64,000 nt of DNA from Tubulanus polymorphus. Lineage: Eukaryota > Animalia > Nemertea. A program made the translations under genes and the position numbers. The notes under the pieces were generated by a model. The model was not told the origin of the DNA. It did not search any database and worked only from the letters and a program-made list of their open reading frames with translations. Positions 6,001 through 14,917 of the stretch are shown piece after piece. Each line of letters starts with the position of its first letter. The first letter of the stretch is position 1. Location of the stretch: the NCBI RefSeq assembly GCF_964204645.1, contig NC_134033.1:16190655-16254654 (forward strand). Reading direction: 5' to 3'.

Positions 6001-7529
6001 CTAAATTTGACAACGAAATTATGAATATATATAAAAAGATTCATTTCCATTTTTACCTTTTTGTTTATTTTGCTCTGTTTCTGTCACGAATCGACCGGTG
6101 TAGATGGCTTCAACCTGCATCGATAAAATCTCAAAAACCACAGAATTAGGCAGATAGACAAAGTAGCAAGTTCAATCTTACGAGCCCGGCCTTGCCCTTC
6201 GTGATGTCGTCCACGTGAAGGCAACGTCTTGACGCGCGGACTATTTGTTTGTATCTTTTGCGACGAAAAACTATCACCGAAGCGAATATTTGACAACGCA
6301 AGCTTGATAATCGTAGAGTTAAAAGATGGTATAACAGTTTGAGCAGAATAACATCTAAACTAGGTCACGATGGCCACTTATTTCATCAAGTCGAATTTAA
6401 CTCAGTCTGGGACGTAAATATTCGGAACTGTCATATAACTTGTAATGAAGATTGATTTTGACGTATAGTTTTCGAATGGAAAATCTGCCTAATTCGTCGT
6501 TCAGCTCTTGAGAGATTATCGGTGATGTTTTTATTTTATCAAGCCAAACTACGCGCGGTGAATGAATGAAATAAGCGGCCGGCAGATATACGGAGAAATC
6601 AGGGGGAGATGGAAGGTGGGGGTGGGGGTAACCGGGTATTGGGTGACTGGCGACCGCGGTGTGTATACCCACGACGTTACGATTTTCGGAACCAAAAATA
6701 CATCGGTAAAAGCAAGACGAAAAAGGATTTAGAAGAACAAAGAACTTGGAACCGTAGTCTACAGGAACGCAAGTTACAAGTGCAGCGTTCGGGATTAGTT
6801 GAAATCCGAAGAAAAGTTGTCACCAGTTACAGGTACATAGTAATCGTAATTGATATGTCTGTTCTACAAAGAAAATTGGTATTAATTTGAATGAATTTGC
6901 ACAGTTATTGCTCAACTGATAACAAACATGTGCCAAAGTCTCTAACAAGTCAGTGTAGCAGTGGTCGAGTGGTTCGGTCACTGGTCTCGCCCCTTGCTCG
7001 TGGTGGTTTCTAGTACCGGTAGCTTGTGGCATTCTTGACCCCTGATCGCTTTTATCTATAGATAGATTGATACCCAAATCGGCTGAAATAAAAATTCGTC
7101 ACTGATTCTCTACGAAAGTCTGAAAAAGAATTGTCTTTTAGATTTTAATAGAAATGATTTAAATGGAAAATGTTTTTCCCGCGACTAGAACGTGTGGACG
7201 CGTACGCATTGGTCGCGTTTAGTGCCCATTTGAAATTCCGTTATCGATCAGCAGGGCTCTATACTGGAGGGGCAGTAGAATCTATGTTGAAGGGGCAGTA
7301 GACTCTATGCTGAAGGGGCAGTAGGGGCAGTAGGCTCTATGTTGAAGGGGTAGTAGACTCTATGTTGCTGCTGATTGATGCTCATGATAAATGTCACCGA
7401 ACGCTTGTGATTCTTCTACATCAATTAAGTTCTAACTTGTTTTCACTTACTCTTATCTTTCTCATCTGAGGCTGCAACAACAGTGGTTATAACAACGACC
7501 AGTAGACCGATGGTGAACAGTCCCCTCAT
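57..7529 (-). CDS. Secreted mosaic protein with von Willebrand A domains, fibronectin type II domains and short two-cysteine modules (3' end outside window)
   Basis: Phase-consistent GT-AG exons in transcript order: 7529-7451 (signal peptide MRGLFTIGLLVVVITTVVAASDEK); 6354-6182 and 6114-6057 (less certain); 5451-5267 + 4643-4289 (vWA: DLIFLIDTS..RVAVVSFS..GARAGVPNIIVLIT); 4078-4010; 3676-3596; 3401-3237 (FN2: CKFPFRYKG..C..WCATTSDYDTDGKWGYC); 3003-2947; 2856-2797; 2429-2101 + 1648-1441 (vWA); 594-532; 423-352; 221-57 (FN2: CIFPFVYK..WCATTKYYDQDKLWGYC). A probable non-coding exon ends at 9621 (donor gtaagt). Confidence 0.85.
1121..1413. mobile_element. MITE, family A (TIR CATCCTCGCTTGCCAGGGTTTG)
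   Basis: Begins catcctcgcttgtcagggtttg and ends caaaccctggcaagcgaggatg. Further copies at 7637-7849 and 22944-23235. Confidence 0.8.
1689..1905. repeat. Tc1/pogo-like MITE end with ~70-bp internal tandem repeat (~2.5 copies)
   Basis: Starts ta|cagtggaac. The unit agaaaatctgttcgttataaccgatagttc.. recurs at 1724, 1795 and 1865. The same sequence lies inside the intact MITE at 46554-46709. Confidence 0.7.
4845..5093. repeat. 73-bp higher-order minisatellite made of alternating 36/37-bp monomers, ~3.3 copies
   Basis: gttgacctgtaccgggtaacaagggtctacagtaaa alternates with gttgaccggtaccgaggaaggaggagtctactgtaga; dimers start at 4845, 4918 and 4991. Confidence 0.9.
7256..7367. repeat. ~23-bp minisatellite
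   Basis: ctatgttgaaggggcagtagact-type unit, about 4-5 copies. Confidence 0.8.
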
Positions 7530-7849: not shown

Positions 7850-8408
7850 CGCTTCAGGTGTCTGAACCCGAGAGCACCATTTTAAGACGGTGGTCCTGCT
7901 GAACGATGTCAAAGACGTTGTCTTTTTGTTTTTTAAAATTTTTCATTTTTGTATATTTGTGTCGGTCTCTGTAAATAATCTATGTTATGAATAAAAAATA
8001 ATAAATTCATTTTTGATCAATTTCTGGCAGGTTTCGATTGAACGTATCCCGGTTTGGGAATTGCGATTCCCGATTACATATATTCTCATGAACGTTTACA
8101 GATAACGCTATTCCGAACATGTGCCTGAAGAGTATCGAATCGGCAAAGAGACCAATCGAAATGTGCCATAAATTCTGTTCTTAAACTTTAAAATTTGTAT
8201 ATAGTTGGTTTTAAACATTTCATAAATTTTAGTTATTCAGCAATGTCCGAAAATGTGGATTTTTTACTGCCATTTAGTATAACTCGAGTGGGTGAAATAT
8301 TATGTTGTGATATTATGTAATATCTATTCGTTCACCACTTTAATCTACATTACAAAATGACATAATAGATCACGATTGATAAAACACTCTGGATCCGTGT
8401 TGAAGCTA

Positions 8409-9492
8409 AGTAGAGAGAATCCCACAATAATAACGAAAAAAACACAGTCCGAAAATGTAACCGAAGCTGGTATTCGCACTATCGTATCATATAATTACCC
8501 TTTGGTTTGCTTCCCTTAAATCTATTTTAGCGTGCAGCTGTTTCTGTACGTTAATTTTCATTTAGTTTGTATCATCTCTGATTACTTGAATTAGTCTCTT
8601 TGTCTCTGGATTGTATATAATATCTCATAATTTTTGTTGTAACTCATTATTTCTGAAGATGACTATTAGGATAAAGTCGAAACGTTGAATAAACTACACT
8701 AGCTCAAGGAATACAGTATTCCAGAAGATGACTATTAGGATAAACTCGAAACGTTGAATAAACTACACTAGCTCAAGGAATACAGTATTCCTGAAGATGA
8801 CTATTAGGATAAAGTCGAAACGTTGAATACACTACACTTGCTCAAGGAATGCAGTATTCCTGAAGATGACTATTAGGATATAGTCGAAACGTTGAATAAA
8901 CTACACTAGCTCAAGGAATACAGTATTCCTGAAGATGACTATTAGGATAAAGTCGAAACGTTGAATACACTACACTTGCTCAAGGAATGCAGTATTCCTG
9001 AAGATGACTTAAGTCGAAACGTTGAATAAACTACATTAGCTCAAGGAAAACAGTATTCCTGAAGATGACTATTAGGATAAAGTCGAAACGTTGAATAAAC
9101 TACACTAGCTCAAGGAATACAGTATTCCTGAAGATGACTATCAGGATATAATCGAAACGTTGAATAAACTATTCACTAGTTCAAGGAATACAGTATTCCT
9201 GAAGATGACTAAAGTCGAAACGTTGAATAAACTACACTAGTTCAAGGAATACAGTATTCCTGAAGATGACTATTAGGATATAATCGAAACGTTGAATAAA
9301 CTATTCACTAGTTCAAGGAATACAGTATTCCTGAAGATGACTAAGGTCGAAACGTCACATAAACTACACTAGCTCAAGGAATACAGTATTCCTGAAGATG
9401 ACTAAAGTCGAAACGTTGAATAAACTACTAAAAGCATCAGTTACATTTTCGGACTGTGTTTTTCTCGTTATTATTGTAGGATTCTCTCTACT
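8409..9492 (+). mobile_element. Non-autonomous Penelope-like (PLE) derivative with inverted flanks
   Basis: 8409-8468 is the reverse complement of 9433-9492 (about 60 bp, few mismatches). It encloses the hammerhead array, and AATAAA follows the core in most units. Hammerhead-bearing pLTRs with inverted 5' segments are an established PLE feature. No ORF is present, so the assignment is inferred. Confidence 0.6.
8646..9428 (+). ncRNA. Tandem array of 12 minimal type I hammerhead ribozyme motifs (61-71 bp units)
   Basis: Unit: UAUUC-CUGAAGA-U-GAC(loop)GUC-GAA-ACGU-U-GAAUA, i.e. helix I (UAUUC/GAAUA), CUGANGA and GAAA cores, helix II, palindromic helix III. Cores start at 8653, 8722 (mutant CAGAAGA), 8791, 8860, 8929, 8998, 9059, 9128, 9199, 9260, 9331 and 9392. 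Confidence 0.85.
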
Positions 9493-10945
9493 AACATGAT
9501 AGATTTACAGCCGCCCAACCTTTCTACTTCTCATAGTATATGATGATAGTCTACTTGTCACCATCAATATGTACAAAAATAATAACAAGAAAAACAACTG
9601 ATTTCAACCAGGAAACTTACCTTTCTGTCTGTAAACCTAAATGTGAAACCCTTTTACGAAGCGACTATTCGAAAATTCCTCGGTTTAAGATCATCCGATT
9701 GTCCTAATGAAACTCTATAATTCGCCGTTGTTATCTCGGGGCCATGTGCGAACTGATATCGGCGCCCAATTATAACGCGAACACAATCGCGCGATGAACG
9801 GCACCTACCCTTAAAAACAGAACAGATGTCGAAAACCTATACCGAGCCTCCCCCCGTGTTTAATTCCCGACGATCGTTATCGAATTCTCGTTTCGAAAAG
9901 CGGCAATTAGATAAAACACGTAACCAATTAGTTTTCTGAGCTGTAACGATTTTATTTCATCGATATTTTAATTAGAATATATATAAATATAATTCTGAAT
10001 ATCGCGTATTGCGTTTGGACTTCAGTTCGGATGCGTTTGGAAAGGTTTGTCTCACCCCGATTATTGAAAACAATAAGCCTACATGTTATTGCGCTCCTAA
10101 AACCTGTACTGTACCTAAAATGGAGGTCGTGCAGTCACGTGCTTTCCAAATGACCAACGCCACCTGTCAGCAACTACGATCAACGAAAACGACGGAACGA
10201 CGGAATAGCTTCAACTCGGATTTATTTACTAGCACTAAACAACGAGTACCGATTTGCTACAAAACAAAAACAACTAAATGAGTAACAATACAATAAAATT
10301 AGCAGAAAATTGTGATAATTCGATAACTTACAATTGCTATCTCCAGCCATAGCGTAGTGCTGGCATACCTCAAATTCGAATGACAGGATAAGACTGTGCA
10401 TTTTACTGAAATGCCGCGAAAATTTATACAGATAGAAGTTCATCGGTTTACTAAATCTATTCAATTCTCCGTGAAGCGAAACGCAAAGGATTTAAGGATA
10501 ATACTGTATACAAATATCCAACAGTACTAATACACGACTTTAACAATACCGGTGAAGGAAGCACAAATTTAACTTTATATACATAGATTTCAACACTGCC
10601 ATATTGAAGGCCATTTACGTGACAGATTCCCAAAGTTTTCAACTGATCATGCATTTGAGCAATCTTTAGTGTCAAAGCTTGTTATATATGAATCAATATA
10701 TCATATTTTGCCCAGCACCTGCTCGAAGGCTTGTTGGTAAATGCACGTTATGTTATCACATCTTAATTTCAATTTTGATTTATAATTCTTCGTTCGTATT
10801 GTCCTGTCTAATGTAAGAGATCATCTGGTGTACTAGTATAACTAAGGAACAATAAAGAGTATTTGTATTTGTATTTGTATTTGTACTTATGCATGACAAG
10901 TCGGCAACACTGGCGGGCAAACTTACTATGACGTCACGTGCTCTA

Positions 10946-11578: not shown

Positions 11579-12571
11579 TCAATCGCATATAACACGATCT
11601 ACAGGCGCGTCTTTCGATCCGACCGAATACCTCCACATACTCAAAGCTCGATTACCCAGTTTAAGGGTTTCGCTCATGATTCCATCTTTTAAAGTTCTAG
11701 TGACGAACGGAAAGTGTCCGTGTAACGCCGCGCAGTCGGTATGTACGACCCTAAAAGTACGAAACGTCCTGTGCGACACGTGGTGAGATGTACATTTCTT
11801 GTCGATATCCCCGTAACGATCTAGTAATACTTTTCTCCACTTGCGAGGCGCCGGTAACATCATTCCCATAAAAGGAACTTTAACGAGTGGGAAAATATCG
11901 GAGTTGTTCCTTCGTACCCACGGCTGAAATGTTGAATCTTTTATATATTCATCTATATGCACATAAGGCCATATATCGACAAGTGGCCAATGCGAGTACG
12001 AAAAAGATAATTTCCACGGGCGACTTTTAAACATTTTTATTTTCATATGTTTTACTTGCGGATCGTTGTCGTCGAAGACTTTCCTAATCTTCAATAAATC
12101 CTTTTTTGACAACTGAACGTCGAAATCGTCGTCCCAGGGCACCGGTCCGTGGTGACGATAGGCGCCGATCAACGAACCGGAAAACAGAAAATACTTGATA
12201 TTCAATCTGCGCATCAACGCATCGAACTGTCTCACCAGTAATCTGTATTGCGCTTTCCATTTTGGCTGGAGCTCCCTCGCGACGAATTTCATACGCAACC
12301 GATTCGACAGAGAGGAGCTCGATGTCTTCGCCCCCTCGATATTATCCTCGCGAAATTCGTAATAACTGTTCACGGAATGCACACTCTTCTTCGCCAGCGG
12401 TAGATACTTTAGTTCACCGGCTCGTCGGAATGTTTGAAAATTCACGAACAATGCGGAAATCGCGATGACGGAACAAACTCCGAGTAAACACAAACAAATT
12501 CTCAAACTCGAGACCATCCCAAAATACAGAGAATACTTGATTTTAACAGTTCTTTCACAATTTGGTTCCAT
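11579..12571 (-). CDS. LicD/fukutin-related nucleotidyltransferase-fold protein, type II membrane, intronless
   Basis: 330-aa ORF with an N-terminal TM anchor and the LicD signature YFLFSGSLIGAYRHHGPVPWDDDFDV, then WPLVDIWPY and DIFPLVKVPFMGMMLPAPR..L..RYG. Confidence 0.9.
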   Translation of the reverse strand: MEPNCERTVKIKYSLYFGMVSSLRICLCLLGVCSVIAISALFVNFQTFRRAGELKYLPLAKKSVHSVNSYYEFREDNIEGAKTSSSSLSNRLRMKFVARELQPKWKAQYRLLVRQFDALMRRLNIKYFLFSGSLIGAYRHHGPVPWDDDFDVQLSKKDLLKIRKVFDDNDPQVKHMKIKMFKSRPWKLSFSYSHWPLVDIWPYVHIDEYIKDSTFQPWVRRNNSDIFPLVKVPFMGMMLPAPRKWRKVLLDRYGDIDKKCTSHHVSHRTFRTFRVVHTDCAALHGHFPFVTRTLKDGIMSETLKLGNRALSMWRYSVGSKDAPVDRVICD

Positions 12572-13846: not shown

Positions 13847-14917
13847 ATGGCAGACGAGATGGCCTCCAGCTCAATAATTATCGGTAACACTACTAGTACC
13901 GGTAGCAGCACCGCCACCGCTGAACCACTTTTCCGATGCCCCGTCAATTTTCTCTACGTCTTCAGATTCAACACTCTCGTCTATGCCCTGGGACCTATAT
14001 GCGCCTTGGGTATCTGTTTAAACGCTTTCAACGTATGCGTATTTCGACGCATGCGAGAGAGCGGGCAAGCTATCTACTTGCTCACGTTAATGTCCTGCGC
14101 GGATATCATCTATTTGGCGAACATCTTTCTCGACGGCCCGGTCCGTTTCGTAACGTCCTACGTCGTTTTCGGCGATGAGGTTTTCCGTCGTCGGCACACG
14201 ACTCTGTTTCCGATTTGGAATTGGATCGCGATCGCCTCGTACAAGTCGACGATGACCGTGCGAAATTGGGCCGTAGTTCTGACGGCCGTCGTTAGGTGTC
14301 TCCACATTTTATTTCCGCTGTGGTCGCGACGAGTCGTCGATCGTCGGTTCGTGAACGTCTGCGCGACAACAATCGTCGCCATAGCAGCCGTGTTATTCGT
14401 ACCGCGCTATTTCGGGTCGAAAATCATTTACGAACTGCCCTGTAAGGAGGCCCCGAGTTCGAGCCCGGTTTACGGTAAGTTCGTCAAAACCAAAGACATG
14501 GGTAAAATATTCACGCATATTTACATAGCGGTAACGGTGTGCGCACCGGCTCTGATACTGATTTTAGCCAATACGGTTTTGCTACGATCCGTCAGCCTTT
14601 CGAGTGTATCTCACAAAAAGATATCGACGAAAAGCGAAAACGACTCAAAACCGGGTTCGAACGCCAGGGCCACGCAGTTAGTCATAATAGCGACGTTCGT
14701 TTATCTGGTTTGCGAATTGCCGACTTTGATCTCTAGAATAGTTGAGTATTTTGTGAAATATGACCGAACGTTGTTAATGTTGTGCGTATCGGCAATCAGG
14801 GATAAACTAACCCCGCTGGACGCTGCTATCAATTGCCTCATATTCGTAATAGCCAGCGCCCATTTTAGAAAAACTGCCAGAAATATGCTATGCAAAGGTC
14901 GAAAAGCTAGCAACTAA
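13847..14917 (+). CDS. Rhodopsin-class 7TM GPCR, FMRFamide/sex-peptide-receptor-like group, intronless
   Basis: 356-aa ORF with seven hydrophobic segments; GICLNAFN (TM1), YLLTLMSCADIIYL (TM2), RC..ILFPL (TM3/IL2), LVCELP (TM6), AAINCLIF..AS..FR (TM7/helix 8). Confidence 0.9.
   Translation: MADEMASSSIIIGNTTSTGSSTATAEPLFRCPVNFLYVFRFNTLVYALGPICALGICLNAFNVCVFRRMRESGQAIYLLTLMSCADIIYLANIFLDGPVRFVTSYVVFGDEVFRRRHTTLFPIWNWIAIASYKSTMTVRNWAVVLTAVVRCLHILFPLWSRRVVDRRFVNVCATTIVAIAAVLFVPRYFGSKIIYELPCKEAPSSSPVYGKFVKTKDMGKIFTHIYIAVTVCAPALILILANTVLLRSVSLSSVSHKKISTKSENDSKPGSNARATQLVIIATFVYLVCELPTLISRIVEYFVKYDRTLLMLCVSAIRDKLTPLDAAINCLIFVIASAHFRKTARNMLCKGRKASN

Follow-up and report, generated by a model that had tools for sequence, protein, structure and literature searches.

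The element that occupies positions 8410-9491 of the window (i.e. the whole stretch of 64,000 nucleotides analysed here) is, with good probability, a non-autonomous 5′-truncated insertion of a Penelope-like element (PLE), in which the element's own minimal type I hammerhead ribozyme has been multiplied to 12 units. It belongs to a known kind of element, being a tandem repeat of minimal hammerheads derived from a PLE, and does not represent a new ultra-small circular-RNA system. The repeated module would be the ribozyme of the PLE itself, with a helix I of 5 bp, an unpaired U before helix II, a G-C-closed helix II of up to 6 bp and the palindrome ACGU in place of helix III. Following the published model, neighboring copies would pair their ACGU segments to form a shared helix III, and each core would then cut the other copy after GUU. 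The 69-nt unit would have arisen by internal deletion from a retrozyme-like repeat of 167 nt, in which the ribozyme is followed by the PLE 3′ region, a tail and a linker. The reverse transcriptase and endonuclease of the PLE would have inserted the arrays, using as templates linear RNAs that bore the PLE 3′ end, and the numbers of units in the arrays would afterwards have been altered locally by duplication at the DNA level.

The tandem array and its hammerhead motif

The array lies on the + strand at 8648-9428 and contains 11 full units, of 61-71 nt each, and one partial unit. TRF places a repeat at 8648-9404 with a period of 69, 11.3 copies and 88% matches, and a manual split of 8648-9428 gives 12 units of 69, 69, 69, 69, 69, 61, 69, 71, 61, 71, 61 and 42 nt, starting at 8648, 8717, 8786, 8855, 8924, 8993, 9054, 9123, 9194, 9255, 9326 and 9387. 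This confirms the 12-unit minisatellite that had been described in the initial annotation, and the assignment of the stretch as an array of 12 minimal-hammerhead modules draws in addition on the box pattern and descriptor matches given below. Unit 12 stops at 42 nt, at the point where the PLE 3′ end resumes.

The unit is composed of UAUUC, CUGAAGA, U, GAC-loop-GUC, GAA, ACGU, U and GAAUA, with the predicted cleavage site after GUU at position 39 of the 69-nt form. Both boxes (CUGANGA and GAAA) are present in the right order and with the right spacing in 11 of the 12 units, the exception being unit 2; the UAUUC/GAAUA helix I with GUU is found in 10, and the ACGU palindrome in all. Helix I is extended to GUAUUC/GAAUAC in units 3 and 5, just as had been annotated. 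The unit sequence had also been read correctly, but the boxes and helices had been ascribed to every unit, and this is not the case for four of them. Unit 2 is altered in the core (CAGAAGA and CUC), the GUC of helix II is replaced by AUC in units 8 and 10, and the 3′ strand of helix I is lost from unit 11. Most of loop 2 is missing from units 6, 9, 11 and 12. Complete hammerhead units follow each other without interruption in units 3-5 and again in units 6-7.

No open frame of at least 80 aa in the window overlaps the element, which therefore seems to lie outside coding sequence. The neighboring frames encode a LicD-family protein (11582-12571, − strand) and a Srw-type 7TM receptor (13847-14914, + strand). 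A separate short tandem repeat is located at 7258-7367, having a unit of 23 nt (TRF also gives 32 nt), with ~2-3 copies and 88-91% matches in each TRF row. Directly after the element, at 9535-9604 (+ strand), the sequence weakly resembles a C/D-box snoRNA (snR61/U31b; 17-18 bits, E 5-7), with UGAUGA and CUGA boxes; the match is far below the gathering score and is probably due to chance.

The motif was searched for using a full minimal-hammerhead descriptor, for which helix I had to have 5 bp, helix II had to be closed by G-C, and both boxes, a 4-nt palindrome and a nucleotide other than G at the cleavage site had to be present. In the window this matched five units in its strict form and eight in its relaxed form, all on the + strand, and 300 dinucleotide-preserving shuffles of the window gave 0 matches. 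The box pattern alone gave 19 matches in the window where 4.4 were expected. The search with Rfam that the initial annotation had proposed had a negative outcome, there being no match to the Rfam hammerhead families in the window at the gathering score, nor at E≤10 on 8300-9700. This is to be expected because the motif is without helix III, which the models require, and it falls outside the canonical hammerhead (Rfam Hammerhead_1 and its relatives), which includes that helix. The small palindrome is predicted to allow a shared helix III in a dimer.

That no Rfam family is matched, and that each of the boxes is short, could be taken to mean that a satellite unit resembles a hammerhead by chance. 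Yet in addition to the empty shuffles, the pattern CTGABGA-N10-32-GAAACGTT occurs at 843 sites genome-wide compared with 16 for a reversed control, an enrichment of ~50-fold, and in most of the listed matches of this box-only pattern helix II has 6-7 bp. Moreover, the identical motif is found at a fixed place in PLE 3′UTRs (see below), and helix II covaries. We regard a fortuitous resemblance as barely conceivable.

The covariation was examined in alignment A1, which consists of window 9059-9092, L060, L062 and five variants from the 843-site search. Over these eight variants, which were chosen by eye from the list of pattern matches and are to that extent biased, 89% of the cells of helix II are paired and six of the seven pairs change on both sides. 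The covariation score was reached in 0 of 500 shuffles, and in slid controls just 18-50% of cells were paired. The core boxes and the G10.1-C11.1 pair are invariant across the eight variants, which come from several PLE families. Helix I was compared in three families. In family B (L058-L060) the sequence is CUGAUGA-U-GGCUAA...UUAGCC-GAAACGUU, with helix I formed by CGC/GCG instead of UUC/GAA, while family C (L062) has a helix II of 7 bp and the palindrome AUAU. Judged by its sequence, the motif is truly a minimal type I hammerhead as found in Penelope elements, and at the level of the PLE family it is real. This was the class put forward in the initial annotation, and the identical core in the 3′UTRs of elements with reverse transcriptase (RT) and GIY-YIG domains, together with the covariation of helix II, bears it out. 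The extra U and the palindromic ACGU, to which attention had also been drawn, are published hallmarks of PLE minimal hammerheads (PMC4209133).

Two further observations concern the motif. A16 and G17, in loop 2 of the 34-nt core, are invariant in all eight variants while the surrounding helix covaries, which hints at a tertiary contact or a contact with protein; the 61-nt class of window units (6, 9, 11 and 12) is without this loop. In the PLE locus L052 (− strand, ~2801) a motif similar to the hammerhead has an A-G mismatch in helix II, and the ACUGU that follows its GAA is not a palindrome; this motif may be a variant with a helix III loop of 3 nt.

A Penelope-like 3′ end surrounding the array

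A genome search for GIY-YIG gave 310 candidates, many having frames of 817-841 aa and many being arranged in inverted pairs. The open frames of L055 and L060 match RVT_1 and GIY-YIG above the Pfam cut-offs, and L054 shares C-terminal residues with L055. The 34-nt core is present in identical form on the coding strand in four of the 12 GIY-YIG loci listed (L054, L055, L056 and L061). It lies 318-320 nt downstream of the stop of the L054 and L055 frames; L056 and L061 are degraded, with shorter open frames, and the core is farther from their longest frames. In all four loci the core is ~95 nt before the end of the element, i.e. the point where the copies cease to resemble each other. In family B, same-strand hammerheads that by their coordinates are 2.86 kb apart flank an 817-aa frame.

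The corresponding sequences can be recognized in the window on both sides of the array. Positions 8469-8716 align almost base for base with the 3′UTR of L054, L055, L056 and L061 (alignment A2), and within this the stretch upstream of the ribozyme (8469-8647, + strand) is a 5′-truncated PLE 3′UTR of ~180 nt. Positions 9387-9491 align with PLE 3′ ends (alignment A3); the section that follows the array (9429-9491, + strand) is the PLE 3′ terminal region in a short form that is without the tail of ~35 nt. The 3′ end in A3 is common to L054, L056, L061 and the array L041, and the similarity of all of them stops at CTCTCTAC. On the far left, 8410-8468 (− strand) is an inverted, 5′-truncated copy of the PLE 3′ end that comprises its last ~59 nt, being equal to the 3′ terminus of the autonomous PLE ending GGATTCTCTCTAC. 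From these alignments the element is composed, in order, of an inverted 3′-end fragment, 3′UTR, the ribozyme module 12 times over, and a 3′ end. The window copy itself has no ORF. Both direct flanks read TAA (8407-8409 and 9492-9494), which is a possible 3-bp target-site duplication, albeit a weak one as three bases can match by chance.

The inverted arms (8409-8468 and 9433-9492) are ~60 nt long and 93% complementary. With TAA at either flank, the whole could be viewed as a MITE-like DNA transposon, in which an internal satellite is bounded by terminal inverted repeats of 60 nt and by a duplicated TAA target site, and the element was initially read in this way. That reading was dropped. The arms are the 3′ end of a retroelement with RT and GIY-YIG domains, the interior is PLE 3′UTR, and no transposase partner was seen. 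Furthermore, where the terminal inverted repeats of a MITE would be equally long in every copy, the upstream inverted copy is of variable extent, being present in 16 of 37 arrays with an arm of ~19 to 147 nt, and absent from the other 21. We consider a DNA transposon very improbable. Because the arms and the interior correspond to the PLE 3′ end and 3′UTR, the apparent terminal inverted repeats are better explained as the usual inverted/forward pairing of PLE copies.

Insertions of PLEs have been characterized by 5′ truncation, an adjacent inverted and truncated copy, and an optional tail of 30-40 bp (PMC8557442). The window element and the arrays exhibit this architecture, with 5′ truncation, the inverted copy and the optional tail. 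The flanks of the 37 arrays follow a recurring plan, in which a forward array ends in a common 3′ region of ~45 nt, with an extension of ~35 nt after it in some copies only; the PLE-type 3′ region, present once, closes 27 of the 37. The upstream reverse complement of the 3′ region often carries about one unit. From the architecture alone we infer that the arrays were probably mobilized by PLE enzymes, as the retention of the element 3′ end and of the inverted truncated copy suggests.

Rearranged copies of the ribozyme region are also found within the PLEs. About 320 nt past the ORF stop of L055 (− strand) part of the ribozyme is duplicated internally (...GTCGAAACGT-ATTAGGATATAGTCGAAACGTT), which may be a first step to multiplication of the module. 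In family B, many of the hammerheads are paired head to head in inverted orientation, their cores separated by just 5-54 nt (C1:273232-273353, 6116999-6117093, 7856486-7856573, 12556556-12628, 15219405-498; C2:4468543-631); these are PLE copies whose truncation point is immediately upstream of the ribozyme, each being linked to an inverted twin.

Origin, turnover and activity of the 69-nt repeat

Genome-wide there were 1,439 first-look candidates for the 69-nt repeat, with scored matches on at least nine contigs. The arrays contain 10-40 units each (there are 20 in L035), and the places listed for them are nearly all in the distal few megabases of chromosomes; the window is ~0.25 Mb from the end of C9. 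The listed RT and GIY-YIG frames are mostly in chromosome interiors.

The end of the unit taken together with the 3′ region matches arrays with a period of 167 bp. The first 65 nt of the 167-nt monomer are equal to the 69-nt unit, and the remainder comprises the 3′ region, the extension and a linker of ~20 nt. Mixed arrays of 69-nt and 167-nt units also exist. On the grounds of the shared 65 nt and the mixed arrays, the 69-nt unit is, as far as its sequence goes, a derivative by internal deletion of the 167-nt retrozyme-like repeat. The shorter form is now the more frequent; allowing at most one mismatch, there are 1,551 junctions of the 69-nt type compared with 190 of the 167-nt type, and the controls gave 0.

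The initial annotation had suggested a self-standing ultra-small circular-RNA system, i.e. an autonomous retrozyme with 69-nt monomers that are cut out, circularized and reverse transcribed by a rolling circle into new arrays. Several points speak in its favor. The hammerhead is a true one of the PLE type, neighboring units are predicted to be able to form a nested double-hammerhead, and the 69-nt units outnumber the 167-nt type ~8 to 1. However, in 27 of the 37 arrays the sequence at the end is a PLE 3′ region foreign to the 69-nt unit, and many arrays carry PLE 3′UTR or a linker of the 167 type on their 5′ side. Since arrays end in a 3′ region that lies outside the unit, a 69-nt circle cannot be the whole template. 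Together with the derivation of the unit by deletion and the junction palindrome discussed below, the position of the arrays inside PLE 3′UTR and 3′-end sequence speaks against the suggestion, and we find such an autonomous system unlikely.

Variation between copies was examined in a conservation profile of 588 full monomers from 37 arrays. It had been stated in the initial annotation that core positions as variable as spacer positions would count against a functional system, and this is what was found, the divergence per site being 1.39% in the core and 1.28% in the spacer. The core is intact in 78.6% of units compared with 84.6% expected at the spacer rate. As conservation of the core does not exceed that of the spacer, there is no visible selection on the copies; the test has little power, as the family is ~98-99% homogeneous per site and thus either very young or strongly homogenized. 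One polymorphism concerns helix II. Unit position 27 (e.g. window 8881 compared with 8812) is T in 54% and A in 45% of the 588 units; T completes a 6-bp helix II (GACUAU/AUAGUC), and A gives an A-A mismatch.

Read from the 3′ end, the patterns of T and A at position 27 are array-specific, with runs and higher-order periodicities, and this points to local turnover at the DNA level. The two variants are mixed in most arrays, which speaks against autonomous monomers. Rolling-circle copying of one monomer would yield runs of identical units, and long runs are indeed found in some arrays (e.g. 22 A-type or 17 T-type units). These runs leave room for rolling-circle copying, and the T/A patterns neither prove nor exclude it. 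A more elaborate scheme would have the 69-nt module freed by double-hammerhead cleavage and circularized, and the PLE reverse transcriptase, primed on the PLE 3′ end, switching onto the circles and rolling. Were this true, the template switch would explain both the single 3′ cap and the long runs of identical units, and the 69-nt circle would be the smallest ribozyme-bearing circular RNA known. We give it little credence.

The folding of the RNA was also predicted. For the 69-nt dimer the predicted minimum free energy is -34.6 kcal/mol, achieved via a near-palindrome at the junction, GGAAUACAGUAUUCC, while the nested double-hammerhead is predicted at -16.9 kcal/mol, i.e. 17.7 kcal/mol higher. 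In the 167-nt form the predicted gap is smaller, at -42.7 compared with -34.5 kcal/mol, or ~8. The near-palindrome is created by the 69-nt deletion. In the predicted fold it sequesters the 5′ strand of helix I together with C3-U4, and it would form first during transcription so that these elements become hidden; this is a further point against autonomous 69-nt monomers. A shared helix III would be just 4 bp. Units of the window array may still cleave, but we think this less likely than not. In sequencing run X1 the flanks are covered ~40x and the repeat far higher, which is DNA-like, and run X2 yielded nothing; neither says anything on expression.

The same observations bear on whether the array is now inert, i.e. 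a satellite seeded by a PLE 3′UTR and propagated by unequal crossing-over, with ribozyme motifs that have no present role at the RNA level. Core and spacer are equally variable and there is no excess of intact units, and each array has its own variant patterns and higher-order repeats. Within the window there is no difference between units 8 and 10, nor between unit 12 and unit 9 over the truncated length of the former. To this can be added the four damaged units, the strong competing fold that is predicted, and the low published in vitro activity of the class (PMC4209133; 10.64898/2026.07.22.740005). Against it, the copies are young, so homogeneous that the selection test is weak, and 79% of units still have an intact core. 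We take an inert relic to be a serious possibility, if somewhat short of an even chance. It is compatible with our preferred reading of a 5′-truncated PLE insertion with a multiplied ribozyme, agreeing with it on origin and differing only on present activity.

Comparison with known systems

Work by Lunse et al. in 2017 is said to have found that PLEs have minimal type I hammerheads in their pseudo-LTRs and 3′ regions. In the minimal hammerheads of PLEs helix I is short, one nucleotide stays unpaired 5′ of stem II and helix III is missing; they are proposed to act as dimers (PMC4209133). The module in the window resembles them closely, having the CUGANGA...GAAA core, a 5-bp helix I, a long helix II (up to 6-7 bp) preceded by one unpaired nucleotide, and no helix III but a palindrome permitting a dimeric double-hammerhead (Cervera and de la Pena 2014, PMC4209133); as in the published cases, the motif is on the sense strand, downstream of an RT and GIY-YIG frame. 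The published ribozymes have a long helix II, are proposed to be dimeric and cleave poorly in vitro (PMC4209133, PMC6765202). Unlike the published PLE hammerheads, which occur once per pLTR and ~3 kb apart, the module here is repeated head to tail every 69 nt, with 10-40 copies per locus. Tandem minimal hammerheads in PLEs have already been noted in reviews (PMC7761336).

MITEs with internal tandem repeats are similar in having inverted ends around a short satellite array. Unlike theirs, the inverted ends of the arrays described here are of variable length and derive from truncated copies of a retroelement, not from terminal inverted repeats that bind a transposase. The hammerhead satellites of newt, schistosome (Sm-alpha) and cave cricket have units of 150-500 nt with a helix III hairpin, and match Rfam Hammerhead_1. 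They too are tandem or dispersed type I hammerhead repeats, and several of them need dimers, helix III being short, but the motif in the window gives no match to Hammerhead_1.

The closest comparison is with retrozymes. The non-LTR retrozymes are tandem repeats of type I hammerheads with monomers of 170-400 nt, and circular RNAs have been shown (Cervera and de la Pena 2020, PMC7229834); the hammerheads of that class are canonical, with loop-loop contacts (PMC7229834). Likewise, the repeats described here are in tandem with a type I hammerhead in each unit, have low GC, co-occur with PLEs and share homology with their terminal regions, and the multimers are enriched towards chromosome ends (PMC7229834; 10.64898/2026.07.22.740005). 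Compared with the retrozymes of 2020 the unit is of 61-71 nt, the ribozyme is the minimal variant, the repeat is known from DNA alone, and a PLE 3′ end caps the majority of the arrays examined. A monomer of 170-400 nt with a canonical hammerhead, as in the 2020 description, is not what is found, the 167-nt relative being at the lower edge of that range.

A preprint by Li et al. (2026) derives vertebrate retrozymes from PLE pLTRs (10.64898/2026.07.22.740005), whose consensus sequences measure 51-972 bp and whose multimers are located at the ends of chromosomes; of nine Xenopus retrozyme dimers, one was cleaved (10.64898/2026.07.22.740005). The size of the 69-nt unit therefore has precedent, as consensus lengths down to 51 bp had already been reported. 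The operational definition of a retrozyme in that work is a TRF array with at least two consecutive complete hammerheads, canonical or minimal (10.64898/2026.07.22.740005), and by this the array in the window is a retrozyme because units 3-5 and 6-7 are consecutive and complete. It provides an invertebrate case for a view put forward recently, in which the tandem hammerhead repeats of animals have branched off from PLEs as non-autonomous forms. For annotation, ~1,500 satellite units can be placed under one explanation, and there is a caution in that a perfect-looking concatemer of ribozymes need not be a free-standing RNA system. What this genome adds to the known systems is that the whole series can be read in one place, from a PLE 3′UTR with one ribozyme to the 167-nt repeat and on to the 69-nt repeat, with the hallmarks of PLE insertion on the arrays.
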